From Geosiphon pyriformis uo1 (taxonomy: Eukaryota > Fungi > Glomeromycota): a stretch of 64,000 nucleotides of DNA. Below the pieces are notes generated by a model, which worked only from the letters and a program-made list of their open reading frames with translations, was not told the DNA's origin and did no database searches. Location of the stretch: contig JAAOMT010000200.1 in NCBI GenBank assembly GCA_016748015.1, forward strand, positions 866,984 to 930,983, written 5' to 3'. This document shows positions 13,770 to 46,497 of the stretch, piece after piece. The stretch's first letter is position 1. Each line of letters opens with the position of its first letter. Made by a program: the position numbers and the translations under genes.

Positions 13770-15086
13770 TCAAGATCCCGAAGCTATCACGCGTACATTC
13801 CAATTACATGTGCGGCCAGCTGGGATGTTTTTCCTGAGATTCAAGTTTTCCTCGTGAGTTTTGTTTAACACCATGAACAACATCCTTTTCAAACTCGAGA
13901 AGTCACGTTGTCTACCTACCCTCTTTTCTTTATGGTATTTGATAATTGTCTTATAGAGGTATGTGGGGGAAAGGAAAGTCAGAACTAGGTCTGGTTTAAC
14001 CTCATTAAGCAAGATAGAGTTTACAAGATGAACGGTGGCCGAAGTGACTTTGAGAAAGGGAAAACTAAATGTATCATCCTCCCGTCTTTCGAGACCTATG
14101 CTCTGAAAATACGAGTCAAAAGCAGTGTACAGATTGCTGTCAGTGCTGCGGCCATATTTATTAGGTGGTACATATTTCGGAGTTGCTACATAGTTCGGAG
14201 TTGCTGGTTGATGAGGAACGTATTCAAATATCGAACGATTAAATCCGAATTTTTTTTCTATGCCTTCAAATCCATTTTCTGTTCGGAATAAAGTATGACA
14301 GAGGACTAACACTAGCTTTGGAGAGATGACGTAAAAAGAATGGTAGGGAATTTGAAATGGAACAAGAATTCCCAATCGATTCACTCCTTCAAAGATTCCA
14401 AATCCGTTGCAGGTTATTATAAACTTATCATTTTCACCGGCTTGCCAAATTACGAGAAAAGAATCGACCATGCGCAGCTCGTAAGCTTCCCTATCTAGCG
14501 TAAAGATTCGCAAGTTGTCTTTGATCTCTTCATGCGGGGTCTCTAGTATTTCACGGATGTTCTGTAACCACAATTCTTGAGGCTTTTTCAACTTCTGCTC
14601 TCGCATAAATTTTTTTACCATCAACAAAGTGAGAATATCAAAACTTTCATTGGAAAATTGGGCCCATCGATGACGGTTTCGATAGTTCATGACAAAGAGG
14701 AACTTGCGTAGATTCGAAAGGTCTCTTCTGACTAAAACGATCTGACTTTCCACTTGAGATGCCTTTATAATATCTCTAACCACTTTTGATGCTTTTTCTT
14801 CAAGTTTTGACAGTTTATCTTCTACGTGCATCGCGTCTTCGTGATTAAGATCTTTATACATGTTTAGGTATCCAAAGGTTTTCGCGACTAAAGAGATGCC
14901 CAGTTGACCGATCTTTCTATCGTAAATTTGGAGAAGTGCTTCTGCCTTATTCTTATTCCTAAAGTTCTGTTTCTGATTTTTCTGTTTGAACAGCTTTTCC
15001 TTGCTCACAAATATCCTCTCATAATTATTGATAGCAAAATTACGAAGAAGGAATCTTGGAATGTAGTGATGGTATTGATCTTCCAT
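13770..15086 (-). CDS. DUF4238-like protein, 438 aa, intronless (paralogue A)
   Basis: Long ORF with N-terminal QYHHYIPRFLLRNF motif typical of DUF4238; intact paralogue of the same length at 50857-52173. Confidence 0.8.
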   Translation of the reverse strand: MEDQYHHYIPRFLLRNFAINNYERIFVSKEKLFKQKNQKQNFRNKNKAEALLQIYDRKIGQLGISLVAKTFGYLNMYKDLNHEDAMHVEDKLSKLEEKASKVVRDIIKASQVESQIVLVRRDLSNLRKFLFVMNYRNRHRWAQFSNESFDILTLLMVKKFMREQKLKKPQELWLQNIREILETPHEEIKDNLRIFTLDREAYELRMVDSFLVIWQAGENDKFIITCNGFGIFEGVNRLGILVPFQIPYHSFYVISPKLVLVLCHTLFRTENGFEGIEKKFGFNRSIFEYVPHQPATPNYVATPKYVPPNKYGRSTDSNLYTAFDSYFQSIGLERREDDTFSFPFLKVTSATVHLVNSILLNEVKPDLVLTFLSPTYLYKTIIKYHKEKRVGRQRDFSSLKRMLFMVLNKTHEENLNLRKNIPAGRTCNWNVRVIASGS

Positions 15087-17884: not shown

Positions 17885-19320
17885 ATGATGACTAAAAGCA
17901 ACAGTGTTACTTGGTTATTAAAAGCTCTATTTGCCATCTTTTTTCTCGAATTCGCTATCTTCATCATCTATGGTAAAAATCTTAAACGGTATGACTTTAA
18001 ATAAAAATTCTTTCACTCTAAATACTAATCTTTTAATCAAATTGGTAAAAGACCTTTTCTTGAACAAATTACCTCTGTTTGTAAAGAGCTTCCGGGAAGT
18101 AAACCCTATTAAACGTATCCACGTTATCAATCCACCTAGTAGTCATAAAACTAAACAGATTGCAAGGTCAAACCTTAGTCAAGGTGGTATCAAGAGTGAA
18201 TACCAAGTTCCTAATATAAAACGTGATCGTATTGATGAATATGCATGGTGGGCAATGCGATCATATTGTTTGGGTCAAAATAACTTGGTTGGCCCTGGGA
18301 TTTATGGTAAGTTTTAAGATAAACAATAAAATTTTACAAGTAAATCGTTTAAAAATGACCTTAAGCATTTAAATTATTCATCATATTTAGCGGCGGTTAC
18401 CGTACGTGATTACAGATTAATTTTAATGGTTAGAGGAGAATCTAGGGTTGATAATCAGCAATACTGGTCAACTCGAAATAATCAACTTGTCGACTATCCT
18501 ACAACAATTCCAGCGGCTATTGGAGCTAAAGTTGATAGAATCTTTTATGAAAACTTTCAGAGAACCAACGGACAAATTACGCCACTTATTTTATCGGCTA
18601 TAAAAGAACACAATATTAAAGTAATTGTGGCCGTTGGGCATGGTTCTGGTGGTGGTGAGACGAAATCTTCCCTCAACTTTGGTTCAATATCATCTTGCAA
18701 ATTCAATTAAAAGTGATGGTTATTTTTTTAGTCTATGCAGTGTTACAAATGTTGGAAATGATTCACTTGGATCTAAATATACCTCTGAAAGTATATACTT
18801 TTGGACAGCCGCATCTAGGCAACAGGGAATTCGTGCAACAATTTGATGATATAAACGATGGAGAAAGAATTTCTGTAAAAAGGGTGACAAACCTGGATGA
18901 TTACGTACCAAAACTTCCACTAAGTACGGAGCAGATGTTTTATGTGCAAAGTAATACAGAAATTTGGATTGAATCTGATGATTGTGAATGTCCTACGGGT
19001 AAGACCTTTATATGCCTCGGGCCGATAATTTATCAGCCTAATCGGCCTGCGATTCAGTTGGAAAGCCAGGTTAGTATTTTACCATTATGATAATTTTTAT
19101 TTTTTTAGACGTAAAAATAACTTGAATCAATTGAATACTATAGGAATGTAATGCTCAGTTTACAAACCCAAATTTTTTACCAAATAATGGCCCTTATTTT
19201 GGGTATATTATGGGAAACTGTTTAAATGACGCACCCCCTTGGATTATTTCTCCACCTGTTCAAGAAACTCTCGATCTGAATTGGTGGAAAAGGTTTTGGT
19301 CAAGACTTCTGGGCTGGTAA
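17885..19320 (+). CDS. Class-3 lipase-fold protein, probably catalytically inactive. Five exons: 17885-17972, 18052-18306, 18391-18654, 18732-19069, 19144-19320
   Basis: GT-AG splicing joins the frames; N-terminal hydrophobic segment; LILMVRGE, VAVGHGSGG, VYTFGQPHLGNREF, RVTNLDDYVPKLP, EIWI, C..NGPYFG motifs. Confidence 0.85.
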
Positions 19321-22104: not shown

Positions 22105-22390
22105 TTTTAGCATTGTCTGTGAATAGACAAGTATTTTTCGTACAACGATAACACATTTTGAAGAATACCCTTTCGAAAGTCCGTTTACGACATTGTATAT
22201 TCATATAATAGATTGTAGTACAAAGAACAATGACCAACCTTTTGCCTTTTAGACATGTTTTTGGGACATTGTTAGCGTAGCTTAACAATGCGTCTATCAA
22301 ATTTATGATTAATGGGAATAATGTTTTGGCTTTTTTAACATTCTGTTTCAATTAATATTGTTTCTAATCATATCTTTTTCTATAAAATTG
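22105..22390 (+). promoter_or_regulatory. Promoter of peptide gene 1: HMG-box-like sites and TATA box
   Basis: CATTGT at 22111 and 22191, AACAATG at 22226, inverted pair CATTGTT..AACAATG at 22267-22290, TATAAAA at 22381. Confidence 0.6.
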
Positions 22391-22501
22391 ATCGTGTCTT
22401 CCCAATTTCTTTTCATTCAACCCAACCAAAGTAACTAAAAGAAAAGGAAAAGAAATTGAATTCTCAAATTCAAATTAAATCAATCAAATAACTTAAACAA
22501 A

Positions 22502-22633
22502 ATGCAACCAACAACCAACAATCAATCTTCATTCAATCCACTCTCAATTATCGCTCCTGGCAACGGCTCAATTAAAGGACCAACTGGTGACCCAGATGAT
22601 GGTAGTGGCACTGGTCAATGCTCAATCATGTAA
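22502..22633 (+). CDS. CaaX (CSIM) lipopeptide pheromone-precursor-like peptide, 43 aa, copy 1
   Basis: ATG..TAA with AAACAAAATG context and TATA at -121; identical protein in five copies with only synonymous differences. Confidence 0.9.
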   Translation: MQPTTNNQSSFNPLSIIAPGNGSIKGPTGDPDDGSGTGQCSIM

Positions 22634-23530
22634 AAGTTGCAGAGTACTCACATTGAAGATACTCTTTTTTCGACCATCCCAGTAAATTGTATGAAAAATT
22701 ATCGTCGGCACTTCTTCAAGTTAATATAATGCAAATTCGGACTCTTTACATAGATATCTAGTTCTTAATAATTAACGGTCGATAGAATTACTCGCAACTA
22801 AAGGATACGGCATATTTTTATTTCACTATTATTTAATATTAATTGTGTATTAGCACTAGAGTAATATAATTTGGTTAGTTTTAACAAAATATTCTTAATA
22901 TGTAAATTTGATAATAATAGGCTTTAATTTTTGAACCAAAAAATCTTTTTTTGTCCAAGTAAAATAAAGCTATTTGGACCTTTAAAAATATCTCACTTAA
23001 TATCAAAGTGAAACTTGAAAGTCAAATAAGAACCTGTTCAATCTTTACTAACTCAACTCATAACTGATATTTACCTTGAAAATTATTAAATTTTTGAAAG
23101 TTAAGAGATTAAAGGCTTGTGATAAATATATATAAACCAATCTTTGAAATATATTTCTCCTATCAAAATTGATTGAAATTAAAATTACTGTTTTATTTAC
23201 GCTCAAATTATTCTATTCCATTTTTTTATTTGAAGTTATGAATTTTTCTTAAACATATCTTTTAACATTGAAAAAAATCTAATCTCTAATTTATACTTGT
23301 AATATGAATTGATAATAGAAGTTAAAATGCCCAAGTTTATTATACTAACAATTAAAAAAATGCCTATAAAAAAATTGCTTTTGCGAAAAACTATAACTCT
23401 TAATACTGCATTGTATTTTCAGGTTTTTTTTGTACTTTTAGCTATTAAGCATTAAAATTTTGATGCAAAATTTAGAATTTATATTTTATTGTAATCTAAG
23501 CTTAAAATTTATTGATGACTTTATAACAAT

Positions 23531-24265
23531 AGAGAGTTTGCGCTACAATGATTTCTTTGTAAATTTACTTCTAGCAGTCCCAAATGGAATTCATTGTAGA
23601 ACAGAGTTTGTGCTACAATGATTTTCCTTGTAAATTTATTTCTGCAATTGGCTAGTGATTTCACGTAATTTTAATGCAAAAGCGTATCAAATCTCACCAT
23701 ATGGAGTCCGAGAACTTGACTTTTGACAGCCTGCGAATGGCTACACTTCTGCTACTACTTCATAAGCGTCAACAGCAACTGGCCATAACAATGAAGACAA
23801 TATTTGAACCTGAACGTCCATTGATTCCCAATACGAGACTTGATCTAAATGCACTTGATGAGGGAACGTGTGTAGCATTTTTCCGGTATGAAGATAAAAG
23901 TTTTATATGATTAATGTAACAATAATGTTTTGAAAAGTATATTGAAGACAACGGCTTATAGATTCAACAAAATACAGATAGAACAACTTGTTGGGCACTT
24001 CCGAATTCCATCAGTTAGTATAGTGAATACTTATTCACTAACAATAAAAATGGTCCACAGTCTTAAAATAGGTTTGAGAATATCTCTCTTAGGTTTGGAC
24101 ATATTTTAAGACATACCTTGTCAGCTTTTGGCTACAGATTGCAAAAAATTAGATAACAAAAATCTCTTACTTGTACAAAGAATTCCGGTTTTAAATTTAT
24201 CTGTAGCCACAAATTTGTGGCTACAGATAAATTTACAAAGAAAATCATTGTAGCGCAAACTCTCT
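23531..24265 (+). mobile_element. 735-bp internally deleted PIF/Harbinger-superfamily (PHIS) DNA transposon
   Basis: About 37-bp TIRs (AGAGAGTTTGCGCTACAATGATT...), AAT duplication versus the empty site near 28470, subterminal repeats, spliced transposase N-terminus (..LDLNALDEGTCVAFFR/FNKIQIEQLVGHFRIP). Confidence 0.85.
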
Positions 24266-25184
24266 AATAAGTATTAGAATTTGGAATGACCAAAGTGGTT
24301 TACATAAAAATTGAAAATCAAATTTGAAAAATGCAACATAATTATTGTTTAAATAGTTAAAGATGCTAATTAATCATCAAAAAACTTCTAAAGAATGCTC
24401 AATTATTTAATCAGAGATTACTACTCTTAAATTTGTAGAATGTAGGAAATACTCTCAAAAATTTCTAAAGAAAAAAAATGCCCAGATGTAAAACTCTACA
24501 TTGTTAAACACAATGGGAAAATAAAACTGACGTTATTATGAATAAATTGTCTAAACGTTAATTTAACATTTTTTATTACTATTTAAACTTCAGATTATAA
24601 AATTCAAAGAATATTTATAGTTCAAGCAGAACAATATCTACTCCAAAACTCGCATAACATCTATATTGTCGTTATAATTGAAATTTCCTTATCAAGCGAG
24701 ATGGTGCTCGAATGAAGATTAAAGATTGTTGACATAGATTCTTTAGGAAAATATAAAATTATCTAAAATTGCCCAAGTTATTTCATTCTTTAGCGGATTA
24801 AAAATTTGAATAATAAGAGTTTATAGTCAATTTTGTCATTTAAAAGGAATATTTGGAGATAAAACTTATTATTAAAATTAAATACGAATGCAAAGTGAGT
24901 TATATAATTAAACATCTTTATAATTTATTCTAAAACTAGGCGAATAATTAGCAAGAGGTTATTTAGACCTAATATAAATAAAATTTAATTTAAAAATAGT
25001 GTCATTTCTACTCAAATAAATTCTAAATTTGAAAATGAAAGTCATTTTATTCCCAATATTTAAAGTATATTTGTTTAAGAAAATTTTTAAAAAAGATATC
25101 CATTCACAATCTTAGACTCAATCAAAATTTAGATTTTGTACAACCATAACACGTTTTGAAGAATACCCTTTTTAAAAAGCCTGT

Positions 25185-25420
25185 TTACGGCATTGTAAAT
25201 TCATCCATCCGTTCTATATTCTATAATATTGTAGTGCAAAGAACAATGACCTACCTCTTGCCTTTTTCGACTAAAATAATCAATTATAAAGGCTGATCCA
25301 TTTTTTAGGATATTGTTTGCATAGCATAACAATTCATATGTTAAATTGGAATATAATATAACTTTTTTAGCATTCTATTTCAATTGATATTGTTTCTTAT
25401 AACATCTTTTTCTATAAAAC
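25185..25420 (+). promoter_or_regulatory. Promoter of peptide gene 2: HMG-box-like sites and TATA box
   Basis: GGCATTGT, ATTGTAGTGCAAAGAACAATG, ATTGTTTGCATAGCATAACAAT, TATAAAA at 25413. Confidence 0.6.
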
Positions 25421-25534
25421 TGGTCGTGCCTTCCCAATTTCTTTCATTCAATCCAACCAAAAGAACTTAAAGAAAAGGAAAAGAAACTGAATTCTCAAAT
25501 TCAAATTCAAATTAAATCAAATAACTTAAACAAA

Positions 25535-25666
25535 ATGCAACCAACAACCAACAATCAATCTTCATTCAATCCACTCTCAATCATCGCTCCTGGCAACGGC
25601 TCAATTAAAGGACCAACCGGTGACCCAGACGATGGCAGTGGCACTGGTCAATGCTCAATCATGTAA
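25535..25666 (+). CDS. CaaX lipopeptide pheromone-precursor-like peptide, copy 2
   Basis: Same 43-aa product; 4 synonymous differences from copy 1; CDS identical to copy 4. Confidence 0.9.
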   Translation: MQPTTNNQSSFNPLSIIAPGNGSIKGPTGDPDDGSGTGQCSIM

Positions 25667-27039
25667 AATTCGCAGAGTATATATATTGAAAATTCTCTTT
25701 TTTCGACCATCCAATAATAAGTGTGAAAAATTATCATCAGCACTTCCGAATTATATACTTCAAGTTAATGTAATGCAAATTTAGACTCTTTACATAGTTA
25801 TCTAGCTATTATTAATCAATATTAAAGCAAAAGTCAATAGAATTATTTATAATGAAATGATATCGCATATTTTTCTTTCACTATTTATTAATATTAATTA
25901 TCTATTAGCATTACTTTTATAAAAGTCATTGGTTTTACTAAAGTTCAAAAAAAATACTTCTAGCATCTAAACTTAATAAAGGAATGCTTTAACTGAAGAA
26001 CTATAGAACTTTTTTTTCAAGAAAAAATTTGGTTTTATATCATAAATAAAATACAGCTACTCGGGCACTTTTAAGGTATATTCTTAGTGAACTTGAAAAG
26101 TGAATTATTCAACGCAAAAATTGAGCCTTAGATATTTTGAATCCCAAAAAAAAAGAAACCTAAATAAAAAATCTGAAGTTTTTACTGCTAATAAAATTTT
26201 TGATTTTGCTGTAGGAAATGCATAACTACTATTTAAAGTAATTTTAAATGTTATGAGCCATTTTTCGCTACTTTTTTTAGCTTAATTTAAATTTTGATGA
26301 CATAACTCATTTAAGTTTTTGAATTATTGTTTCTAATTTAAAAATTTTACGGGCAAAAAAAAATTGACATAAATATATAAAGTGTCACGATAGAAGGTTA
26401 TTAGACTAGAAAACAAAAAACTAATATAATATATATTAAAATTTAGAAATAAACAGTTAAACATGACATCCTTTTTTGAAAAATAACGAATTATTTAAAT
26501 TGGGTTAAATTGTTTCGCCCTTTAGCAGGTTTCGGTTTGAATCTCTAATTAGCAGCTATTCGAATAAGGCGTTGAAATAATTAAATTACAAAGCAGGAAT
26601 CCTTACAATTAATACAGGAGAGGGTAGCAAATTTATCTAAAAACTAAAATAATAATAAGTGTCAATTTGGTATGGGTAGATCGAAAAATTCGAGCTTTTT
26701 AAAATAAATTTTCATATGCACACTTAGCAAAAAGTTTTTAAAGCCTCATAACATAAATAATATTTTTTACTAATTACTTATTAATTCAAAGTTTCTCTCA
26801 TATCAATTCAGATTAATTTTGGTATTCAAAAGCATTCCGTTTATAGATTGATACTTGTACTAAAAGTCAATTTATTCACGATTTTTTTGGTATATTTGCT
26901 TATGTAAAGGTTTTAAAAATATATTCATTTGCAATCTTAAATTCAAAGGTATTTTGCATGCTAGTGATAAATTTTCTTGCATGTAATACTCATTAGCATA
27001 CAGTTAAACATTAGAAACTGAAATAACCGAAATTAGAGT

Positions 27040-27360
27040 TTTTAACATTGTCTGTGAATAATAAGTATTCTTTGTACAACTATAATACCTTTTTGAAGAA
27101 AACCATTTTGAAAGCCTGTTTACGGCATTGTAAATTCATGCATCCGTTCTATAATATTGTTGTGCAAAAAACAATGACCCACCTCTTGCCTTTTTCGACT
27201 AAAATAATCAATTTTAAAAGCTGATCCGTTTTTAGGACATTGTTAGTATAGCTAAACAATGCGTTTATCAAATTCATGATTAAATTGAATAATGGTTTGA
27301 CTTTTTTAACATTCTGCTTCAGTTAATATTGTTTCTAATCATATCTTTTTCTATAAAATT
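27040..27360 (+). promoter_or_regulatory. Promoter of peptide gene 3: HMG-box-like sites and TATA box
   Basis: CATTGT x2, AACAATGACC, CATTGTTAGTATAGCTAAACAATG, TATAAAA at 27352. Confidence 0.6.
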
Positions 27361-27472
27361 GATCGTGTCTTCCCAATTTCTTTTCATTCAACCCAACCAA
27401 AGTAACTAAAAGAAAAGGAAAAGAAATTGAATTCTCAAATTCAAATTAAATCAATCAAATAACTTAAACAAA

Positions 27473-27604
27473 ATGCAACCAACAACCAACAATCAATCCT
27501 CATTCAATCCGCTCTCAATCATTGCTCCTGGCAACGGCTCAATTAAAGGACCAACTGGTGACCCAGACGATGGTAGTGGCACTGGTCAATGTTCGATTAT
27601 GTAA
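27473..27604 (+). CDS. CaaX lipopeptide pheromone-precursor-like peptide, copy 3
   Basis: Same 43-aa product; 8 synonymous differences from copy 1, three of them within the CSIM codons. Confidence 0.9.
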   Translation: MQPTTNNQSSFNPLSIIAPGNGSIKGPTGDPDDGSGTGQCSIM

Positions 27605-29504
27605 AAGTTCCAGAGTATTCATATTGAAGATTCTCTTTTTTCGACCATCCCAGTAAATTGTATGAAAAATTATCGTCGGCACTTCTTCAAGTTAATATAA
27701 TGCAAATTCGGACTCTTTACATAGATATCTAGTTCTTAATAATTAACGGTCGATAGAATTACTCGCAACTAAAGGATACGGCATATTTTTATTTCACTAT
27801 TATTTAATATTAATTGTGTATTAGCACTAGAGTAATATAATTTGGTTAGTTTTAACAAAATATTCTTAATATGTAAATTTGATAATAATAGGCTTTAATT
27901 TTTGAACCAAAAAATCTTTTTTTGTTCAAGTAAAATAAAGCTATTTGGACCTTTAAAAATATCTCACTTAATATCAAAGTGAAACTTGAAAGTCAAATAA
28001 GAACCTGTTCAATCTTTACTAACTCAACTCATACCTGATATTTACCTTAAAAATTAATAAATTTTGAGAGGAAAGAAATTAAAAGCTTGCAATAAACTAT
28101 ATTTCTCTTAACAAAATTCATTGAAATTAAAATTAACTGTTTTATTTACGCTCAAATTATTCTATTCGATTTTTTTATTTAAAGTCATCAATTTTTCCTA
28201 AAAATATCTTTTAACACTGGAAAAAATCTAATCTCTAATTTATACTTGTAATATGAATTGATAATAGAAGTTAAAATGCCAAAGTTTATTATACTAAAAA
28301 TGCTTCTATAAAATATTGCTTTTGCAAAAACTATATTTTTAATACTGCTTTAAGAAAAAACAATATTACATTGTATTTTTCATGACTTTTAGCTATTAAG
28401 CATTAAACTCTTGATGTAAAAATTTAGAATTTCTTTTTTATTGTAATCTAAGCTTAAAATTTTCTTGATAACAATAAGCATTAGAATCTGGAATGACCAA
28501 AGTGGTTTTACATAAAAATTGAAAATCAAATTTGAAAAATGCAACTTAATTATTGTTTAAATGGTTAAAGATGCTAATTTATCATCAAATAACTTCTAAA
28601 GACTGCTGAAATATTTAATCAGAGATTAATATTCTTAAATTTGTAGAATGTAGAAAATACTCTCAAAATTTTTTAAAGGAAAAAATGCCCCGATGTAAAG
28701 CTCTTTATGGTATAACACAATGGGAAAATAAAACTGCCGTTATTATAAATGTATTGTCTAAACGTTAATTTAACATTATTTATTACTATTTAAACTTCAG
28801 ATTATAAAATTCAAAGAATATTTATAGTTCAAGCAGAACAATATCTACTCCGCAACTCGCATAATATCTATATTGTTCTTTATAATTGAAATTTCCCTAT
28901 CTTCCTATTTTCGACTTAAGAATTGAAGAATGGAAACGAGATGGTGCTCGAATGAATATGAAAGATTGTTGAACATAAATTCTTTGGGAAACTATGAAAT
29001 TATCTAATATTGACCAAATTATTAATTCTTTAGCGTGTTTAAATTTGAATAATAAGAGTTGATAGTCAATTTTGTCATTTAAAAGGAATATTTGGAGGTA
29101 AAACTTATTATTAAAATGAAATACGAATGCAAAGTGAGTTATATAATTAAACATCTTTATAATTTATTCTAAAACTAGGCGAATAATTAGCAAGAGCTTA
29201 TTTGAACCTAATACAAATAAAACTTTAATTTAAAATTACTATCATTTCTATCCAAATCAATTCTGAATTTAAAAGCGTTTGTTCATAGATTGATACTTTT
29301 ACTAAGAAAACAAAAATGCTATTTTATTTCACATTCACTGAATTTCGAACATAAATCTTTCCACACATTTCACTTGTAAAGAGATTCCAAAAAAATCATA
29401 TTTAAAATCTTTAATTCAAAAGTATTTTGCATGGTAGTCATAAATTTTCTTGCATTAAGATGTTGTTAAACATCAAAAATTGAATAATAGAAATTTAAAG
29501 TTCT

Positions 29505-29785
29505 TAGCATTGTCCGTGAATAAACATGTATTCTTTGTACAACTATAACTCAAAAGTCTGTTAACGGCATTGTAAATTCATGCATTCATTCTATAATATT
29601 GTAATGCAAAGAACAATGACCTAAAACTTGCCTTTTTCGAGTAAAAATTATCAATCTTAAAATCCGTATTTAGAATATTGTTAGCATAGCTTAACAATGC
29701 ATCTGTCAAATTTATGATCGAATTAGGCTTTTTTAATATTCTGCTTAATTAGTATTGTTTCTAATCACATCTTTTTCTATAAAAC
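29505..29785 (+). promoter_or_regulatory. Promoter of peptide gene 4: HMG-box-like sites and TATA box
   Basis: CATTGT x2, ATTGTAATGCAAAGAACAATG, ATTGTTAGCATAGCTTAACAATG, TATAAAA at 29778. Confidence 0.6.
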
Positions 29786-29899
29786 TGGTCGTGCCTTCCC
29801 AATTTCTTTCATTCAATCCAACCAAAAGAACTTAAAGAAAAGGAAAAGAAACTGAATTCTCAAATTCAAATTCAAATTAAATCAAATAACTTAAACAAA

Positions 29900-30031
29900 A
29901 TGCAACCAACAACCAACAATCAATCTTCATTCAATCCACTCTCAATCATCGCTCCTGGCAACGGCTCAATTAAAGGACCAACCGGTGACCCAGACGATGG
30001 CAGTGGCACTGGTCAATGCTCAATCATGTAA
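29900..30031 (+). CDS. CaaX lipopeptide pheromone-precursor-like peptide, copy 4
   Basis: Same 43-aa product; CDS identical to copy 2. Confidence 0.9.
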   Translation: MQPTTNNQSSFNPLSIIAPGNGSIKGPTGDPDDGSGTGQCSIM

Positions 30032-33019
30032 AATTCGCAGAGTATTTATATTAAAAATTCTCTTTTTTCGACCATCCAATAATAAGTGTGAAAAATTATC
30101 GTCAGCACTTCCGAATTATATACTTTAAGTTAATGCATAGTTATCTAGCTAATAATAATCAATATTAAAGCAAAAGTCAATAGAATTATTTATAATGAAT
30201 AGATATCGCATATTTTTCTTTCATAATTTTTTAATATTAATTGTATATTAGCATTATAGTAATATAATTTGATTGGTTTTACCAAAGGTTAAATTAAATA
30301 TCCTAGTATTTAAATTTGGTAATAAAATGCTTTAATTCAAGAGCCATAAAATCTTTTTTCTCAAAACAAAATCAAGCTAATTGGACCCATAAAAGTATAT
30401 TTCTTAATGACGAAGTGAAATTTGAAAGTTAAATAAGAAACTAGTCAATTATTACTAACTCAACTCAAAGCATTCGAATATTAAGATGATCATAAACCTT
30501 GTAAAAAACCAAAACCTGAATTAAAAAGTCTTGATATTTAATTTCTGAATTTAGTTTTAAAAAACTGTGAAGTCGTTTTCACCATGCAGGAAAATATTTT
30601 AAGTTAAATCAAATTTTTAAAATATAAATTATATTACTTTTAATTGTTATTTTAATTTGAAAACTTATCAGCAAAGCAGTAGCAAAAATCTTGAATTTCT
30701 TTATATAGCTTTCAAATTATTCATATATTCAGCAAAAAAGTGAAGCTTATTCTTTTATACGATTATTCCCTACTGAATAAAGCTATTTCCCAAAGTCTAT
30801 TTTGAAACTTTCCACAGAATTAATCTAGAGCCTCTGACAAGAAAACTGCGATCATTCAATTCTCAATAGTGTGAAAATCATTAAAATCAGTCATGAAAAA
30901 TTCTATGGTTTGAATTATTTAGTTATCTTAATTGTTTGATTTCTCGCTTTTGTGTTGAAGCTGGAAATTTCGAAAAAAAAATTCAAATTATCAATTCTAA
31001 GGATTTTTTGCTTTAGCAACTTTAAAACCAAGGTTTTTTCATTGAATCTATTTGTGTATTAAATATTAATAACTTATCTACTCCATTAAAATTTCAATTC
31101 TGTAATATTATGAAATTATTTCTTAATTATTTCGGTGAATTAATAAACTGTCAAAAATAAATAAAAAAATATCTCTCTCTTTGATGCTAGGGATATTAGG
31201 CTCAATTAGATTTTTATCATATTTTATATTAATCATAACTAGATTCACTCAAAATCTTGATTTAACCTAATAAAAAATAAGCCATTTTTAGAGTGTTAGC
31301 GACATTATTAAGAAAATATTCAAGGTAACAAATACTATAAAGCTATTTATTATCATTATGATACACTATAGATAACAGGAAAATGAAACCCTATTTAACA
31401 AATATTAATGCACTTAAGCAATATTTCCTCTTTGCATAAAGAATTTCTCCAAGAAAATTTGTTCCGAAAACATATATTGATATAATTCACCAAATTCTAT
31501 TTTTATCGGATTTTTGAGCACATCATGAAAATCTTGAAATTAGAAAAACTCACCCCAACAGCTGAAACAGAGATAAACCTTTGTAAAAAGTAAACAAAAT
31601 CTATTTTATTTACCCCATATTCATCTTCAAAATTATTAAGTTTTTGAAAGCAAAGTGATTAAAAGCTTGGAATTAATATATATCATCGAATTAAAATTCA
31701 ATTATTTCTCCACACTCAAAATATTCTATGGCACTATTTTTATTTGAAGTTATGAGTTTGCTTAAAAATATTTAGAAGAAATTTAAGCCCCAATTTTTAC
31801 TTTTAATATAAATTAATAATAGAAATAAAATATCGAAGTTTATTATGCTGACAATTGAAAAAATGCCTCTAAAAACGATTGCTTTTGTGAAAGAATATAT
31901 TTTTAATACTATTTTGAACTTATAGTTATTAAGCAACAAAATTTCTGATATAAATTTAGAATTTATTTTTTATTGATGAATTTATAGCAATAAATATAAG
32001 AAAATATTTTCAAGGATTATTATTTAATATAAAATTATTTAATTTTGAATATCTCAAGATTGTCAAACAAATATTTATACAAAATTCGATATAAAATTAT
32101 CCAAAATTTAGATTCATTATTATTTAGATAGTAAAATATGTTAATTTAATCATAAAAAACTTATAGAAAATACTGTATTTCTTAATATTAACGAAAAAAT
32201 AATATACAATCAGAAAATAAAATTTTTAAATTTTCAGGGTTTAGAAAATACCCTCAAAAAATTATTAAAGAACATAAATAAACAAAGTGCAAAGCTCTTC
32301 ATGGTTAAAAACAATTGGAAAATAAAACTAAAAAGTTAAAAATGAAGCATTGTCTAAACGTTAATTTAAAATTTTTTTATTAGTATTTAAACTTCAGATT
32401 ACAAAATTCAAAAATATTTATAGTTCAAGCAGAACAATATCTACTCCGCAACTCGCATAATATCTATATTGTTCTTTATAATTGAAATTACCCTATCTTC
32501 CTATTTTCGACTTAAGAATTGAAGAATGGAAACGAGATGGTGGTCGAATGAATATGAAAGATTGTTGAACATAAATTCTTTGGGAAACTATAAAATTATC
32601 TAATATTGACCAAGTTATTTCATTCTTTAGCGTGTTTAAATTTGAATAATAAGAGTTTATAGTCAATTTTGTCATTTAAAAGGAATATTTGGAGGTAAAA
32701 CTTATTATTAAAATGAAATACGAATGCAAAGTGAGTTATATAATTAAACATCTTTATAATTTATTCTAAAACTAGGCGAATAATTAGCAAGAGGTTATTT
32801 AGACCTAATATAAATAAAAATTTAATTTAAAAATAGTGTCATTTCTACTCAAATCAATTCTAAATTTAAAAATGAAAGTCATTTTATTCCCAATATTTAA
32901 AGTATATTTGTTTAAGAAAATTTTTAAAAAAGATATCCATTCACAATCTTAGACTCAATCAAAATTTAGAGTTTGTACAACTATAACAATTTTTGAAGAA
33001 TACCCTTTTAAAAAGCCTG

Positions 33020-33260
33020 TTTATGGCATTGTAAATTCATCCATCCGTTCAATAATATTGTAGCGCAAAGAACAATGACCCAAATCTTGCCTTTTTCGAC
33101 TAAAATGGTCAATTTTAAAAGCTGATCCGTTTTTAGGATATTGTTTGCATAGCATAACAATTCATTTGTTAAATTTATGATTAAATAGAATATAATTTAA
33201 CTTTTTTAACATTCTGCTTCAATTAATATTGTTTCTTATCATTCCTTTTTCTATAAAACT
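33020..33260 (+). promoter_or_regulatory. Promoter of peptide gene 5: HMG-box-like sites and TATA box
   Basis: GGCATTGT, ATTGTAGCGCAAAGAACAATG, ATTGTTTGCATAGCATAACAAT, TATAAAA at 33252. Confidence 0.6.
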
Positions 33261-33362
33261 GATCTTGCCTTCCTAATTTCTTTTCATTCAATCCAACCAA
33301 AAGAAATAAAAGAAGAGGAATCCTCAAATTCAGTTTAAATCAAATCAAATAACTTAAACAAA

Positions 33363-33494
33363 ATGCAACCAACAACCAACAATCAATCTTCATTCAATCC
33401 ACTCTCAATTATCGCTCCTGGCAACGGCTCAATTAAAGGACCAACTGGTGACCCAGATGATGGTAGTGGCACTGGTCAATGCTCAATCATGTAA
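33363..33494 (+). CDS. CaaX lipopeptide pheromone-precursor-like peptide, copy 5
   Basis: Same 43-aa product; CDS identical to copy 1. Confidence 0.9.
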   Translation: MQPTTNNQSSFNPLSIIAPGNGSIKGPTGDPDDGSGTGQCSIM

Positions 33495-38898: not shown

Positions 38899-40039
38899 AT
38901 GGCTTTTGAAATTGATAGCATTCAGTTAACCGTTGTTATGTTTAGCGTTGTTATAAGTTTAGCTACAAGTACAGTATTAATACGATATATGTGGAAAAGG
39001 TTTACTTATCTGAGACTTGCTTGGTAAGATTTCTTTGATTGCGGTCTTTTGTTTTCAAATTGTTTTGAGTAATTAACAAAAAAAATTAACATTCTGCTTT
39101 TATATGTTCTCGACCCCTTCCCTTTTCAAAAGTGTTTTTGCAGGAATAACAATAATTCTCTTATCAACATGCAACCTTCTAAAAACCCTATTTCCAAACA
39201 CAATCTACGAAAAGTGGTATTGGTTCTGTTATGAACTTCTCTCGGGAACATACACCTCCCTAATTACAATTTTCTTATTATTCACTGGGCGACGATTTTA
39301 TGCGCCACAATCTCGACACAATAACCTTTTCAAATTTACATGTTTCTTTCTTTTGGCAACTATCATCGTACACGGGACAATTGCATTTTTTGTATTACCA
39401 CCGCTAATACAAAGTTCTTCGACGCTTTCTGAAAAGTTTGAGATAAAAAAAGAACCCAATCTGAACTCATATATTGTTCAAGTGATAGTGAGAATGCTAG
39501 TTAGCGTCTTTGGATTTTTGTATGCTTTTATGCCAGTCTTACGCTTACAATTCCGTTCCATGAAAAAGGAATATGGAAATGCAACGAAACCTGACAACAA
39601 TAATATGAACAAGTTGAATAATAATGAAGGATCAACATATGATAGAAAAGAACTCAACCCACAAAATGCCGCAGTTGGGATATGGTACATGACCACCATT
39701 ACATTATTAGTCGTATTATACATTTCGTTTTACGCATCAGTATTCATTCTTGGGATGAAGAATTCGGTAGAAGGAAGCACAAAGGCTCCATTTTTGCCAG
39801 TGAATAATGCCATTGATTTTATTTTACGGATTGGAGTCTTACTTGTTTATGGTATTCCTCCTTCTGGAGTTGTGCTGAAATTTTTGATCAAGAAGATCAA
39901 AGGTAGTAACAAGTTGAATACAAGTGATGATTTTAATATTAGTATACATGTTATAAAAAATTTTGATGAAGATAACACAACTATTAATGAAGATGTTGAA
40001 AGCAGTAGGGAAAGCCAGAAGGGCTGGTTAGATTTGTAG
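38899..40039 (+). CDS. Seven-transmembrane (GPCR-like) protein, 343 aa; exons 38899-39023 and 39133-40039
   Basis: GTAAG..AG intron joins MAFEIDSIQLTVVMFSVVISLATSTVLIRYMWKRFTYLRLAC in frame to the 39104 ORF; seven hydrophobic segments, long polar loop between helices 5 and 6, acidic Ser/Thr-rich C-tail. Confidence 0.75.
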
Positions 40040-42702: not shown

Positions 42703-45700
42703 ATGTTAATCATTGATTGGCTTCATCATTCGATAATTTTTTGTTTGCTTCCTTGCTTTATGGTATTCTCTGGACAAAAGCTGTCAATGTCACCAGTGCA
42801 AAAAACGCTATTCTCTTTTATACAGATTCAGCGCCTTCTATCAAAGTCTCATACTAATTCAAGGACATTGAAACATCAAGCATCCTCTAATTGTTCACGC
42901 TCTCAGCGACTCATTAATAAAGACCGCTACTATATTCTCTCTCTGAGGGTTACTTGTAAATTTCGTCCTGGGGATTTCTTCCTGTCTCCACCAACAGGAA
43001 TTAGTCGTTTTTTGAGTACAAACTGTAGCGCTGAACTCCAGGTTAACAAAGTACCAGACCTGGATAAGTCGAATATTCCTTGGACAGTAAAATGTTTTCT
43101 TGCCCTTCTGAATGAATGTGCCAATCAGGCTCATAAAGAGCGACAAATTGACCCAAATGTGATGAACGTCATGTGGGACTTATATGTCTCAATTGAATCG
43201 CAAGAAAAAGTATTTTTGAAGTTGGATGATTTCAATCTATTTATCTATATATTAAAACATTATGATCACAAAATCAAGCAACAACCATCAAAATTGATCA
43301 AGATTCTAGATGATATCAAGGAAGTCAAGCTGAAGTTTGGGAGGCAGCACTACAATACTTTGATTCAAGCACTAGGATGGAAAAAAGATCTAGCAGGTGC
43401 ACTAATGGTTTTCCTCGAACTACAATCTCATAGATTTCCACCAAATGGAGTGACTTTCGATTCATTAATGGATGCGTTCCTCTCGAGTTTTAATCACAAG
43501 GAGGCCATGAAATTATATCGGGGGCTCAAAGATCCCATTATCCCACAGGATGTTCCCATAAAATTTTTCATCAAACTTCTTAAGTTTCAATGTGATCGAG
43601 GCTATCTGAAGTCTGCGATCTCAATATATAAAGATATGATAGAGGCAGATCGACAACCCTCGATCTACGTAGCCAACGTAATCTTGAGTGCAATATGTGA
43701 ACATAATGATTTGACGACAGGCTTACAATTTTTTCGAGATAATTATCCCCCAAACGCAGCAAAAATTGCTTCTAGTTACAATATTCTTCTTACTACTGCA
43801 CTCCAAAATGACGAACGCATTATGATCCTTCAAATTTGGAAAGAAATGGTAGACAACGAAGTGGAACCAGATATAATTTCATATACACTTCTAATGCGAC
43901 TTCATCTCCGCGAATTGAAGCTCAGAGAAGCTCTCGATGTTTACACAGAGATGCTTAAAATAAATATTATTCCAGACTCTCCTATATTCCGGATTTTGGT
44001 TCAAGCGTGTGTTTTCAAGGAAGAGTGGAAACCTATGTTGCCATTTATTTGTGAAGAAATGAAACAATTCGATTTCATTGATCAGAGTTCTTTGACATAT
44101 AATATTGTTCTCAAAGCTCTTACTCAGCTTGGAATCAAGTTCGCCCAACGCGTTATGTATGATTTAATTTGTGCTGGATTATCTGTTGACAGTAGATCCC
44201 CTAAAGCTTTGATTGAAGAATACGTGTCTCGTAATGATTTACCAAGTGCCTCTCAAATCTTACAACGCTGCCAATCTCATAACATCCTCCCTGATCAACA
44301 AACATATGAAATTTTAATTCGTGCTTATATACGTGAAGGGAATATTTTACAAGTCCAAAAATACTATAGCGAATTTATTAGCAACAATAATCGCGATTTC
44401 CCTCAGAGAGCTTGGCCGAAACAAAACGATGACATATCCGGTATAAACGAATTTCTCAAATTATGTTCAAAAAACAAATTGAAATTCGGGATCGATTTCT
44501 TTGAACATATCCAAAAGCTTGGCTTCAAGGGAAACACAATGACGTACACCATATTAGTTCAATTTTTACTGGATTTAGGGCGTCGTGAAGACAATAAACT
44601 TTTAGCACGCATATACGAAAATGCATCTACCTCAAATATACAATTTCCTCTTGATATATATAATCTTTTATTGCGCCGGTTTATAATTACACGAAACACA
44701 ATATGCATGCATAAAGTCTTCGAGGATATGATGCATGCCAATCTTGAGCCCGATTCCGAAACATTCAGGGTTTTAGTAGACGGATTTAACAAATTTTCAG
44801 AAGCTGATGTATTGGAAATAGTTTATGATAAATTAAAAAAATCATTCAGTGCCAAATTGAGTAGAATTAATTACAATGGATTTATTTATGGATTCTGCCG
44901 GAATTCTAGAATGAATCTGGCTTATAAGGTATATACGGATATGCGCACGTCCGGATTGTCTCCTGATGTTATAACCTTTAGCCACTTAATCAACGGTTAC
45001 GCGAGTGAGAAAGATATTAAATCAGCACATCTGATATTCAGCGATATGCCCTTATCAGGAATTAAACCGACGATCGATATCTACCAATCTCTCATAAATG
45101 GATATATAAACTTATCACTACCATCAAAAGCCATCCAATTATATGAGGATCTGGCCAAAGTACAACCCTTTCTGATCGATAATTCGATTTATCATAATAT
45201 TATTTCGGCGTGCCTTCAAACATCAAACTTTGGGCTTGCTAACGAATTACTTAACAAAATGGAAAAAGACACAACCCCTTCCAAGAGATTCACTGGGGTC
45301 ATTATTCAAAGCATTGATCGTCAAGATCTTGGGACGGCTATTTTTATATTTGAACATATGGTAATAAAAAAAATAGAAATCACTTTATTATTATGCCAAC
45401 ATCTCGTAGAAGCTTTGTCGAAACACTCTGAATTTCCTTTGGTCCGTCGTTTATACCGTTATTTGGTAGCCCGTAAAGGTAGACGTAAAGTGCTGTTAAG
45501 TATGGCCCTCTTAAATTCTGTTATTAAATGCGCATCGATGACAAAACATACTAGATATGCTAAAAGGGTTCTCGAAGATTTACTGCGCTTTGGTTTCACA
45601 CCTTCGACTGAGACAATGAATGCCTTTATAAGTGGTCCGATCAGAGCAGGACACATTGAAGAAGCGAAAAAATTGATGGATAAAATGCGAGCTCTTTATA

Positions 45701-46497
45701 ATATCGCACCAAATACAGAAACTTTCTCGATGATGATCAATTCGTTGGTACATCGCGGTCAACTCGGAGAAGCAATGGCAGTATTGCGGTCAATGAAGCA
45801 AATTGACATTAGACCTAATATTGCAATATTCAATTCAATTTTTGACGGATATATTCACAGTTGCCCCTGGCGTGTTGCCTTACGTGTATTAGAACAACTA
45901 TTACGAGAGTATCCATTCAAACCTGATATTGGAACTGCCAACATTCTATGTGAATTTTTGATCAAGAAAAGATCTAGATCGTTACTAAAATTACGTGAAT
46001 TATATAATTGTTTGCATGGACGTGGCATGGAAGTTTTCATGAAAAATGAGATCGGGGCAGTAAAGGAACAAGTCAGTGAGTCGCCTCTAGTAAACGGACC
46101 TTCAAGGCTAGATTCTCCTTCTTTGGAAGTTGGAAAACCCTATCAAGATTTAATTTCACATGATAAAACCAATTTCCAAGATTTTGCCAGCGATCACCAG
46201 ATATTTGATTTACTTTTTAAAATTACAAAAATTCGAGTCAAAAATAAAAAATCTGTTTCCACAAATCAGCAAAATTTAAATGAGCTCATCGATGAACATC
46301 AAAAGACCCCCAAGAATGAAACACTCAATGAAATAATAGATTTATATTTCCAAGTAAGCAAAGAATCCTTAAAATCACTTACGTTGACTCGATCTACATA
46401 TGTAAAGTTCTTGAAAGCCTTCTGGAAATATGAAGATGTGAGTGCAACTCGGCAAGTCTTTGCAGATATGAGAAAAAGAAAAAAATTAATATTATAA
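42703..46497 (+). CDS. Pentatricopeptide-repeat (PPR) protein, probably mitochondrial; likely true start ATG at 42787
   Basis: 1264-codon ORF with many 35-aa PPR motifs (e.g. INYNGFIYGFCRNSRMNLAYKVYTDMRTSGLSPDVITFSHLINGY); Arg/Ser-rich, acid-free N-terminus from M29. Confidence 0.92.
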   Translation: MLIIDWLHHSIIFCLLPCFMVFSGQKLSMSPVQKTLFSFIQIQRLLSKSHTNSRTLKHQASSNCSRSQRLINKDRYYILSLRVTCKFRPGDFFLSPPTGISRFLSTNCSAELQVNKVPDLDKSNIPWTVKCFLALLNECANQAHKERQIDPNVMNVMWDLYVSIESQEKVFLKLDDFNLFIYILKHYDHKIKQQPSKLIKILDDIKEVKLKFGRQHYNTLIQALGWKKDLAGALMVFLELQSHRFPPNGVTFDSLMDAFLSSFNHKEAMKLYRGLKDPIIPQDVPIKFFIKLLKFQCDRGYLKSAISIYKDMIEADRQPSIYVANVILSAICEHNDLTTGLQFFRDNYPPNAAKIASSYNILLTTALQNDERIMILQIWKEMVDNEVEPDIISYTLLMRLHLRELKLREALDVYTEMLKINIIPDSPIFRILVQACVFKEEWKPMLPFICEEMKQFDFIDQSSLTYNIVLKALTQLGIKFAQRVMYDLICAGLSVDSRSPKALIEEYVSRNDLPSASQILQRCQSHNILPDQQTYEILIRAYIREGNILQVQKYYSEFISNNNRDFPQRAWPKQNDDISGINEFLKLCSKNKLKFGIDFFEHIQKLGFKGNTMTYTILVQFLLDLGRREDNKLLARIYENASTSNIQFPLDIYNLLLRRFIITRNTICMHKVFEDMMHANLEPDSETFRVLVDGFNKFSEADVLEIVYDKLKKSFSAKLSRINYNGFIYGFCRNSRMNLAYKVYTDMRTSGLSPDVITFSHLINGYASEKDIKSAHLIFSDMPLSGIKPTIDIYQSLINGYINLSLPSKAIQLYEDLAKVQPFLIDNSIYHNIISACLQTSNFGLANELLNKMEKDTTPSKRFTGVIIQSIDRQDLGTAIFIFEHMVIKKIEITLLLCQHLVEALSKHSEFPLVRRLYRYLVARKGRRKVLLSMALLNSVIKCASMTKHTRYAKRVLEDLLRFGFTPSTETMNAFISGPIRAGHIEEAKKLMDKMRALYNIAPNTETFSMMINSLVHRGQLGEAMAVLRSMKQIDIRPNIAIFNSIFDGYIHSCPWRVALRVLEQLLREYPFKPDIGTANILCEFLIKKRSRSLLKLRELYNCLHGRGMEVFMKNEIGAVKEQVSESPLVNGPSRLDSPSLEVGKPYQDLISHDKTNFQDFASDHQIFDLLFKITKIRVKNKKSVSTNQQNLNELIDEHQKTPKNETLNEIIDLYFQVSKESLKSLTLTRSTYVKFLKAFWKYEDVSATRQVFADMRKRKKLIL

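Follow-up and report, generated by a model that had tools for sequence, protein, structure and literature searches.

The window analysed here, a 64,000 nt stretch of the Geosiphon pyriformis genome, contains five short ORFs that closely resemble one another, which raises the question of whether they are genes and of what kind of product they might encode. A preliminary description of this DNA had proposed that five 132 bp ORFs code for one shared peptide, a candidate precursor of a lipopeptide pheromone. Inspection of the sequence showed all five to be present, on the plus strand, and to encode an identical 43 aa peptide whose only Cys residue lies in a terminal CSIM motif (a CaaX end), followed by a TAA stop codon:

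22502..22633, plus strand: peptide gene copy 1, 43 aa ORF ending in CSIM and TAA (from translation and a 21 nt probe)
25535..25666, plus strand: peptide gene copy 2, same peptide, four synonymous differences relative to copy 1
27473..27604, plus strand: peptide gene copy 3, same peptide, eight synonymous differences relative to copy 1
29900..30031, plus strand: peptide gene copy 4, same peptide, ORF DNA identical to that of copy 2
33363..33494, plus strand: peptide gene copy 5, same peptide, ORF DNA identical to that of copy 1

The 21 nt probe, which covers the CaaX motif and the stop codon, found five sites, exactly those of the five copies (0 expected). The ORFs differed from one another at 10 nucleotide sites, all ten being third-position, synonymous changes, a pattern with a probability of about 1e-5 to 5e-7 if substitutions were random. 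Within CSIM, the codons for Cys, Ser and Ile account for three of the eight differences between copies 1 and 3. The absence of a signal peptide, also proposed earlier, was borne out by the polar N-terminus, a GRAVY value of -0.57 and a maximum hydropathy of 1.19 over 9 aa.

The figure of five copies holds for the window, but is too low for the genome, which contains 33 intact copies distributed over 12 contigs. Eleven of them lie on the contig of the window, the six further copies being located 49–64 kb downstream of the last window copy (18–33 kb past the window end). The copies form tandem arrays and are found in both orientations. At least four pseudogenes, decayed by frameshifts or stop codons, were also present, so that the family shows birth and death of its copies. 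The 33 intact copies comprise 29 distinct DNA sequences that encode only eight peptides. Their mean pairwise pS was 0.387 (maximum 0.73) and their pN 0.017, giving a pN/pS ratio of 0.044 (0.02 when two outliers were left out). Over 33 old paralogues, a ratio of about 0.04 indicates translation of the peptide and strong constraint on it, the purifying selection on the ORF being very strong. CSIM was terminal in all 33 copies, and its Cys, Ser and Ile codons each showed synonymous variants and no replacements. The most constrained part was the tail: the segment preceding the Cys (pre-Cys segment), invariant in 31 of the 33 copies, had a pN of 0.007, compared with 0.025 for the N-terminal leader, at a pS of about 0.39.

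This substitution pattern bears on the possibility that the arrays are a non-coding repeat, or a transposon fragment, with an accidental ORF. The dispersal of multiple copies over many contigs and in both orientations, together with a MITE-like element observed in one array spacer, would fit that explanation. However, it accounts neither for such a low pN/pS at a pS of 0.39 nor for the conservation of frame, length and CaaX in another genus (see below), and the substitution pattern effectively refutes it. The idea that the genes are transposon cargo was likewise discarded: the spacer DNA of the array unit matched only other peptide arrays, and the MITE was a separate insertion.

The genes had been considered unannotated. 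This remains true of the five window copies, to which no returned model maps, but at least eight other Geosiphon copies are deposited as 'hypothetical protein G9A89_...', with lengths of 50–76 aa, and some have been merged into larger models. In the deposited models of all three species in which the family was found (Geosiphon and the two Ambispora species described below), the gene is spliced beyond its stop codon into an unconserved tail and the CaaX end is lost. Were these models correct, the real products would have 50–790 aa and CaaX would not be C-terminal. Gene predictors did repeatedly choose a donor at or near AT|GTAA, a site overlapping the last codon and the stop; a Met in the X position followed by a stop codon makes the GT dinucleotide unavoidable there. 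Against these models, the donor varied from one to another (after residue 34, 37, 42 or 43) and each tail was different; the stop immediately after CaaX was kept in 33 Geosiphon and six Ambispora copies; and conservation, about 0.93 inside the ORF, dropped to about 0.7 downstream of it, with indels. The spliced products are thus very improbable. Standard gene prediction mis-splices these genes systematically, hiding their CaaX end, and similar genes may consequently be hidden in the genomes of other arbuscular mycorrhizal fungi (AMF).

The host had been inferred from the letters alone to be Glomeromycotina- or Mucoromycota-like, and G. pyriformis, a relative of AMF, is indeed a member of the Glomeromycotina (Archaeosporales), not a dikaryan fungus. 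Homologues lacking the terminal CaaX had been named as evidence that would refute the pheromone proposal. Six homologues were identified in Ambispora leptoticha and A. gerdemannii, which belong to another family; they are 39–43 aa long, and all end in CaaX followed by a stop (CVIM in four copies, CIIW in one and CVIV in one). Judged by its residues, the CaaX motif is conserved and of the farnesyltransferase type in the three species; the CVIV end, from A. gerdemannii, has a less canonical X residue, which speaks against a pheromone. The leaders of the two Ambispora species differed at 2–3 of 29 positions, and their 11 pre-Cys residues at 8 of 11, while the leaders of Geosiphon and Ambispora differed at 7–8 of 29. 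The pre-Cys residues are therefore nearly fixed within Geosiphon and divergent between the Ambispora species, the leader being conserved across both genera.

A leader conserved between genera next to a divergent pre-Cys segment could also point to a prenylated intracellular micro-protein, that is, a peptide that is farnesylated but remains whole and is held at a membrane, either an endomembrane or the plasma membrane. Function would then reside in its 28 conserved N-terminal residues, with the pre-Cys segment serving as a hypervariable linker of the kind seen in Ras/Rho tails; the high copy number might provide the product in bulk, and the lack of linkage of the arrays to a receptor gene (see below) would agree with this. 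Nevertheless, the pre-Cys segment is tighter than the leader in Geosiphon, unlike a mere linker, the peptide has no recognisable domain or fold, and HMG-type promoter sites, described below, are a usual feature of pheromone genes. These 43 aa contain no Pfam domain and lack the GTPase or GGL domain that precedes CaaX in Ras/Rho or G-gamma/Ste18 proteins. We consider this explanation unlikely, but not one to be set aside.

An exhaustive phmmer search and a profile search detected the family only in Geosiphon and Ambispora (Archaeosporales), and no homologue was found in a scan of JGI metagenomes. Because the peptide has only 43 aa, homologues more diverged than those of Ambispora would fall below detection, and the searches do not establish that other AMF orders lack the family. 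None of 13 peptides matched any Pfam model at E-values up to 10, pheromone models such as PF08015 included, and the ESM Atlas gave no usable match. In terms of sequence, the CaaX peptides are a new family.

The regions upstream of the five window copies have the following putative elements:

22111..22501, plus strand: putative promoter and 5′ leader of copy 1; five ACAATG/CATTGT cores and one ACAAAG (-391 to -217), TATAAAA at 22381 (-121), A-rich start context
25191..25534, plus strand: putative promoter of copy 2; two ACAATG cores (-344, -292), TATAAAA at 25413 (-122)
27046..27472, plus strand: putative promoter of copy 3; five ACAATG cores and one CTTTGT, TATAAAA at 27352 (-121)
29508..29899, plus strand: putative promoter of copy 4; four ACAATG cores and one CTTTGT, TATAAAA at 29778 (-122)
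33027..33362, plus strand: putative promoter of copy 5; two ACAATG cores (-336, -291), TATAAAA at 33252 (-111)

The TATA box and A-rich start reported in the preliminary description were thus found in all five copies (TATAAAA at -111 to -122; start context CTTAAACAAAATG). Genome-wide, TATAAA was present at -160 to -90 in 32 of the 33 Geosiphon copies, and an A at -3 in all of them. HMG-box-type ACAATG cores were enriched about 10-fold upstream of the genes in both genera, concentrating at -200 to -400: Geosiphon had 2–5 per 400 bp against a background of 0.29, and Ambispora 13 in five regions of 400 bp against about 1.3 expected. The A. gerdemannii copy ending in CVIV had no ACAATG upstream. 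Paralogous promoters are not independent samples, which limits these statistics. A clear AACAAAG Ste11-box was seen in some Geosiphon copies only. At least 121 HMG-box matches exist in Geosiphon, and the factor binding the ACAATG cores remains unidentified. In Schizosaccharomyces pombe, M-boxes of the form ACAAT(G/A), present in the M-factor genes, serve the HMG protein Mat1-Mc (PMC1693924).

A pheromone would require a receptor, processing enzymes and an exporter. Only one intact STE3 gene is present in the Geosiphon genome; its two exons together cover the full profile, and it is located on a different contig from the peptide arrays and not linked to them. Three HMG genes are its neighbours. 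For Ambispora and other AMF, a length-filtered search for STE3 yielded one fragment of 188 aa, which is uninformative. No STE2 match was obtained, though this search was uninformative. Among the CaaX enzymes, a check of which was called for in the preliminary description, ICMT/Ste14, Ste24 (Peptidase_M48_N) and three prenyltransferase beta genes were found; Rce1 was not detected by an exon-wise genome search, an outcome that is not conclusive. Several loci code for full-size ABC transporters with two tandem ABC_membrane domains; these are not assigned as Ste6 orthologues. A STE6 orthologue has been reported for Rhizophagus (PMC3834313). Co-folding of the STE3 exons, as two unjoined chains, with the 43 aa precursor gave no verdict, at a score of 0.00; with no controls, a farnesyl group that cannot be modelled and a disordered peptide, this is no evidence either way. 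A neighbouring 311 aa multi-TM ORF had no Pfam match and only a weak THH1/TOM/GPR137-like feature match, and was rejected as a STE3-type receptor. A homeodomain gene about 21 kb from the C657 peptide copies had no partner homeodomain gene, and is not shown to be MAT.

Taken together, the 43 aa peptide is probably, though by no means certainly, the precursor of an a-factor-type farnesylated pheromone, its expression, processing and receptor binding being inferred. Those refuting tests named in the preliminary description that could be run all turned out favourably, and the proposal of a lipopeptide pheromone precursor stands supported. In the three species the peptides are short (39–43 aa), without a signal peptide or transmembrane segment, and their sole Cys belongs to a terminal CaaX that directly precedes the stop codon, as expected for a-factor/M-factor-type precursors. 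By analogy with that pathway, the Cys would be farnesylated, SIM cleaved off by Ste24 (or Rce1), and the new C-terminus methyl-esterified by ICMT/Ste14. Clipping of the conserved N-terminal leader may then leave about 8–15 residues with the end ...GSGTGQC(farnesyl)-OMe (in A. leptoticha, ...GNGSTQC would take its place), a product which a Ste6-type ABC pump would export and STE3 on another hypha or nucleotype would sense; HMG-box factors are presumed to drive transcription of the genes. Whether the signal serves mating or another form of hypha-to-hypha recognition is undecided.

Several observations count against a pheromone. Identical pheromone genes usually number 1–4, far fewer than 33. The leader is unusually conserved between genera, which leaves room for the uncut peptide to function as a micro-protein tethered to a membrane; the arrays are unlinked to STE3; no similarity to any Pfam pheromone model was found; Rce1 went undetected; and the family is seen only in Archaeosporales.

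The peptide might also be a secreted lipopeptide with a non-mating role, possibly not acting via STE3, such as self-signalling when hyphae fuse (anastomosis), sensing of density, or signalling to the symbiont, which is Nostoc in Geosiphon and plants in Ambispora. These fungi have no known sexual stage, and whether AMF are sexual is disputed (PMC11414155); further, the extreme copy number suggests a constitutive, high-volume output, and the family is common to fungi with very different hosts. Yet this leaves an intact STE3 without any other known class of ligand, and a mature region that diverges between congeners typically goes with recognition of mates or kin, not with a signal to a host. We find this role rather improbable, somewhat more so than the micro-protein; only downstream biology would distinguish it from a pheromone.

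The preferred reading, an a-factor-type pheromone, can be compared with known systems. In Saccharomyces cerevisiae, the a-factor precursors MFA1 and MFA2 have 36 and 38 aa, end in CVIA and depend on Ram1/Ram2, Ste24/Rce1, Ste14, Axl1/Ste23, Ste6 and Ste3. The Geosiphon peptide shares with them its short length, the lack of a signal peptide, the sole Cys in a terminal CaaX followed by a stop, a hydrophilic N-terminal extension and more than one gene copy, and its genome likewise contains STE3, Ste24, ICMT and prenyltransferases. It differs in having no sequence similarity, 33 copies instead of two, a leader strongly conserved across Geosiphon and Ambispora and, unlike the hydrophobic a-factor, a predicted mature part that is Gly/Asp-rich and acidic. 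The S. pombe mfm1-3 genes code for CaaX precursors of about 41–44 aa and are driven by the HMG proteins Mat1-Mc and Ste11. As inferred for Geosiphon, several genes yield the same mature peptide; precursor length is also similar, and both have HMG sites of the ACAAT(G/A) type some hundreds of bp upstream (PMC1693924). In S. pombe, however, the sites are at -130 to -190, against -200 to -400 in Geosiphon, and the S. pombe arrangement is matched neither by the patchy Ste11-box nor by an identified binding factor. Basidiomycete lipopeptide pheromones (Ustilago Mfa1/2, Cryptococcus MFalpha/MFa and the Agaricomycete phb genes; Pfam PF08015) have receptors of the STE3 type. Their CaaX precursors of about 35–70 aa are also often multicopy and clustered, with a mature region that diverges between species or alleles, but their genes usually lie beside STE3 in a P/R locus, whereas the Geosiphon arrays and STE3 are on different contigs; the Geosiphon copies are, in addition, almost all identical rather than allelically diverse, and do not match PF08015. 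To our knowledge, the trisporoids of Mucorales are the only sex signals characterised in Mucoromycota in the broad sense. Although from the same phylum-level neighbourhood, they are carotenoid-derived small terpenoids, not gene-encoded, putatively prenylated peptides.

Sex in AMF is a long-standing unresolved question, and the lineage has long been regarded as anciently asexual. STE3, STE6 and a MAPK cascade were found in AMF without any pheromone gene (Halary et al. 2013, PMC3834313), and later transcriptome work also lacked one (PMC7490403). The multicopy, strongly selected CaaX family of Geosiphon and Ambispora is a concrete candidate ligand for the orphan STE3 of AMF. A functioning farnesyl-peptide/STE3 pheromone system in Archaeosporales and, by extension, in Glomeromycotina is a tentative proposition, a little short of an even chance. 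If true, this would be the first gene-encoded peptide pheromone outside Dikarya, and lipopeptide signalling would no longer be confined to that group; a-factor-type signalling would predate the Mucoromycota–Dikarya split, and the missing ligand of STE3 would be supplied, providing a chemical handle on mating or nucleotype recognition in these fungi.

The five peptide ORFs of the preliminary description were found in the window exactly where it had placed them, and all encode one 43-aa peptide (e.g. 22502-22630, + strand) whose sole Cys lies within the terminal CSIM, with TAA directly after. The promoter features it had reported were also seen, the TATA box as TATAAAA at -111 to -122 and the A-rich start context with an A at -3. 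A probe for the CaaX motif plus stop matched five sites, all of them peptide ORFs (0 expected). When the five units were aligned, conservation was highest in the ORF; the alignable flanks spanned ∼0.7–1.3 kb with many indels, and the 10 variable ORF sites were all third-position and synonymous.

The number five holds for the window, but not for the family. Searching the whole genome (128.3 Mb in 792 contigs, GC ∼27%; the window is G000:C729:866984-930983) in six frames returned 37 matches, all of which were fetched. Intact 43-aa ORFs account for 33 of them, spread over 12 contigs; the other four have decayed through frameshifts or stops.

Peptide gene copies in the Geosiphon genome, and the element inserted among them
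Window 22502-22633, + strand: copy 1
Window 25535-25666, + strand: copy 2
Window 27473-27604, + strand: copy 3
Window 29900-30031, + strand: copy 4
Window 33363-33494, + strand: copy 5
C729 (window contig), all + strand: 11 copies, five in the window and six at 949-964 kb
G000:C729:949174-964096, + strand: second array, six identical-peptide copies (loci L003, L008, L010, L016, L017, L019)
C578: five copies
C551: five copies
C622: three copies
C657: two copies
Elsewhere: seven singletons
Window ∼23528-24280: MITE-like element of ∼750 bp, ending in inverted repeats of ∼48 bp and lying in the spacer that separates copy 1 from copy 2

The second array starts ∼18 kb beyond the window and continues as far as the contig does, which makes the array sizes minimum values. 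It is to this array, and not to the window copies, that the deposited models G9A89_021138 to G9A89_021140 belong. Possible assembly redundancy was limited to one pair of loci (L008/L009, 98% over 2.9 kb).

The 33 intact ORFs comprise 29 distinct DNA sequences and eight peptides, with 24 copies identical. Mean pairwise pS was 0.387 (maximum 0.73) and pN 0.017, a pN/pS of 0.044 (0.02 without the outlier loci L034 and L035). High pS with very low pN indicates old paralogues held to a single protein sequence; a non-coding repeat cannot yield this pattern, and nor can a recent burst of copies. Synonymous variants but zero replacements were seen at each of the Cys, Ser and Ile codons of CSIM, and the C-terminal 20 residues (ending GQCSIM) were invariant in 31 of the 33 copies. 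Although expression data are lacking, the peptide ORF is almost certainly a real, selected coding gene.

Self-comparison showed the duplicated unit to be the gene plus its spacer. Spacer DNA had no matches beyond the other peptide arrays of C729 and C578, except for the MITE-like element, which has 93–98% identical copies on more than 10 other contigs and whose inverted ends carry ACAATG and CTTTGT. The possibility that the peptide gene is transposon cargo was rejected on these grounds, the element being a separate insertion.

Other window genes included an intron-less PPR-repeat protein (42703-46497, + strand, 1264 aa) and a class-3 lipase fragment (18695-19090, + strand), both seemingly ordinary neighbours. 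Two intron-less 438-aa DUF4238 ORFs (13770-15086 and 50857-52173, both - strand; 77% mutual identity) flank the region, each adjoining extremely AT-rich stretches (13–16% GC at 12-14, 48-50 and 54-56 kb). DUF4238 is mostly bacterial.

Exhaustive phmmer and profile searches, with other AMF genomes outside their scope, detected no family members outside Archaeosporales. Those seen come from Geosiphon, Ambispora leptoticha (four copies within 10 kb, L043) and A. gerdemannii (two copies on separate contigs, L044 and L052), the Ambispora copies being read from fetched DNA. All six Ambispora copies are unspliced ORFs of 39–43 aa. Loss of the CaaX in homologues, which would have counted against the pheromone reading, was not seen: all six end in CaaX (CVIM in four, CIIW and CVIV in one each) with a stop directly after. 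The deposited models in the three species share the ATG start, leave the ORF after residue 34, 37, 42 or 43, and continue into differing, unconserved tails or fuse with neighbouring genes. A terminal Met followed by a stop codon makes a GT dinucleotide unavoidable, and gene predictors read AT|GTAA as a donor site. The spliced models are disfavoured, since the stop is conserved and conservation drops after it.

The leader, as far as …IKGPT, has been conserved from one genus to the other (alignment A2). Between A. leptoticha and A. gerdemannii it differs at 2–3 of 29 positions, whereas the 11-residue segment preceding the CaaX Cys differs at eight. Within Geosiphon this segment is the most constrained (pN 0.007; the leader, with the same pS, has 0.025). 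The main rival to a secreted pheromone is a membrane-tethered prenylated micro-protein. Judged from sequence alone, a segment fixed within species but divergent between congeners would fit a receptor-matched ligand and would not fit a passive linker. The two A. gerdemannii genes (L044:8307-8435 and L052:10001-10129) differ in this segment and in CaaX (CVIM, CVIV), which might point to ligand diversity, whether allelic or paralogous.

Of all 7-mers, only AACAATG/CATTGTT was shared by the upstream regions of at least 28 of the 33 Geosiphon copies and all five Ambispora copies first examined. ACAATG, the SOX/MATA-type HMG-box core, was counted 2–5 times in the upstream 400 bp of every window copy versus 0.29 per 400-bp background tile, and 13 times (∼1.3 expected) in the five 400-bp Ambispora regions; it was absent within 400 bp upstream of the second A. 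gerdemannii copy. The Geosiphon sites are concentrated at -200 to -400. These statistics are qualified by the non-independence of paralogous promoters and by the presence of the core in the inverted ends of the MITE-like element as well. In Schizosaccharomyces pombe, the ACAAT(G/A) M-boxes of the M-factor genes mfm1-3 serve the HMG protein Mat1-Mc and lie beside an AACAAAG Ste11-box (PMC1693924, Table 3).

Among the processing enzymes proposed for a CaaX pheromone, Ste24 (Peptidase_M48_N), ICMT/Ste14 and prenyltransferase beta (three loci) were found in the genome, but Rce1 was not detected in an exon-wise search. Several full-size ABC transporter loci were present. A single STE3 gene, on C642, covers Pfam STE3 positions 1-292 in two open exons with an 83-nt GT-AG intron between them; STE2 gave no match in a search uninformative for it. 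At G000:C642:334886-349000 (L021, L051, L048), the genes after STE3, all on its strand and within ∼14 kb, are one for a ferric reductase and then three HMG-box genes in tandem (ORFs of 392, 365 and 406 aa). Receptor and regulators may be clustered here, or the neighbourhood may be due to chance (rough odds ∼2%), since the genome holds at least 121 HMG-box matches.

Three further genes lie near peptide copies. A 603-aa homeodomain gene (G000:C657:365669-365839) lies ∼21 kb from the copies at 387080 and 389542; no second homeodomain gene was found beside it, so an AMF HD2/HD1-like MAT pair is not shown there. The C469 copy has an HMG-box gene 12.6 kb away. Located 5.6 kb downstream of the array is a 311-aa multi-pass membrane ORF (window 39104-40039, + strand); it was rejected as an STE3-like receptor, having no Pfam family and a weak feature-level likeness to THH1/TOM1/GPR137-type 7TM proteins.

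Halary et al. 2013 reported a single STE3 and a STE6 in Rhizophagus and found no peptide-pheromone genes, possibly because such genes are short and divergent (PMC3834313). Mateus et al. 2020 described mating-related transcripts without pheromone genes (PMC7490403), and a 2024 study argued that R. irregularis is likely asexual (PMC11414155). A full-text search, which did not cover the Geosiphon genome paper, turned up no account of CaaX pheromones from Glomeromycotina or Mucoromycota. By analogy, the design of the peptide gene is that of a-factor, M-factor and basidiomycete pheromones: short, multicopy and signal-peptide-less, the only Cys being that of a conserved FTase-type CaaX at the C-terminus. 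Unusual for a pheromone are the 33 copies, the conserved leader, the acidic, Gly-rich predicted mature region and the absence of linkage to STE3. The precursor genes co-occur in the genome with an orphan STE3, processing-enzyme genes and HMG-type promoter sites. We infer that the peptide is very probably prenylated and, in the absence of binding data, lean towards its being a secreted STE3 ligand; that its role is specifically sexual is a tentative inference, which may well prove wrong.
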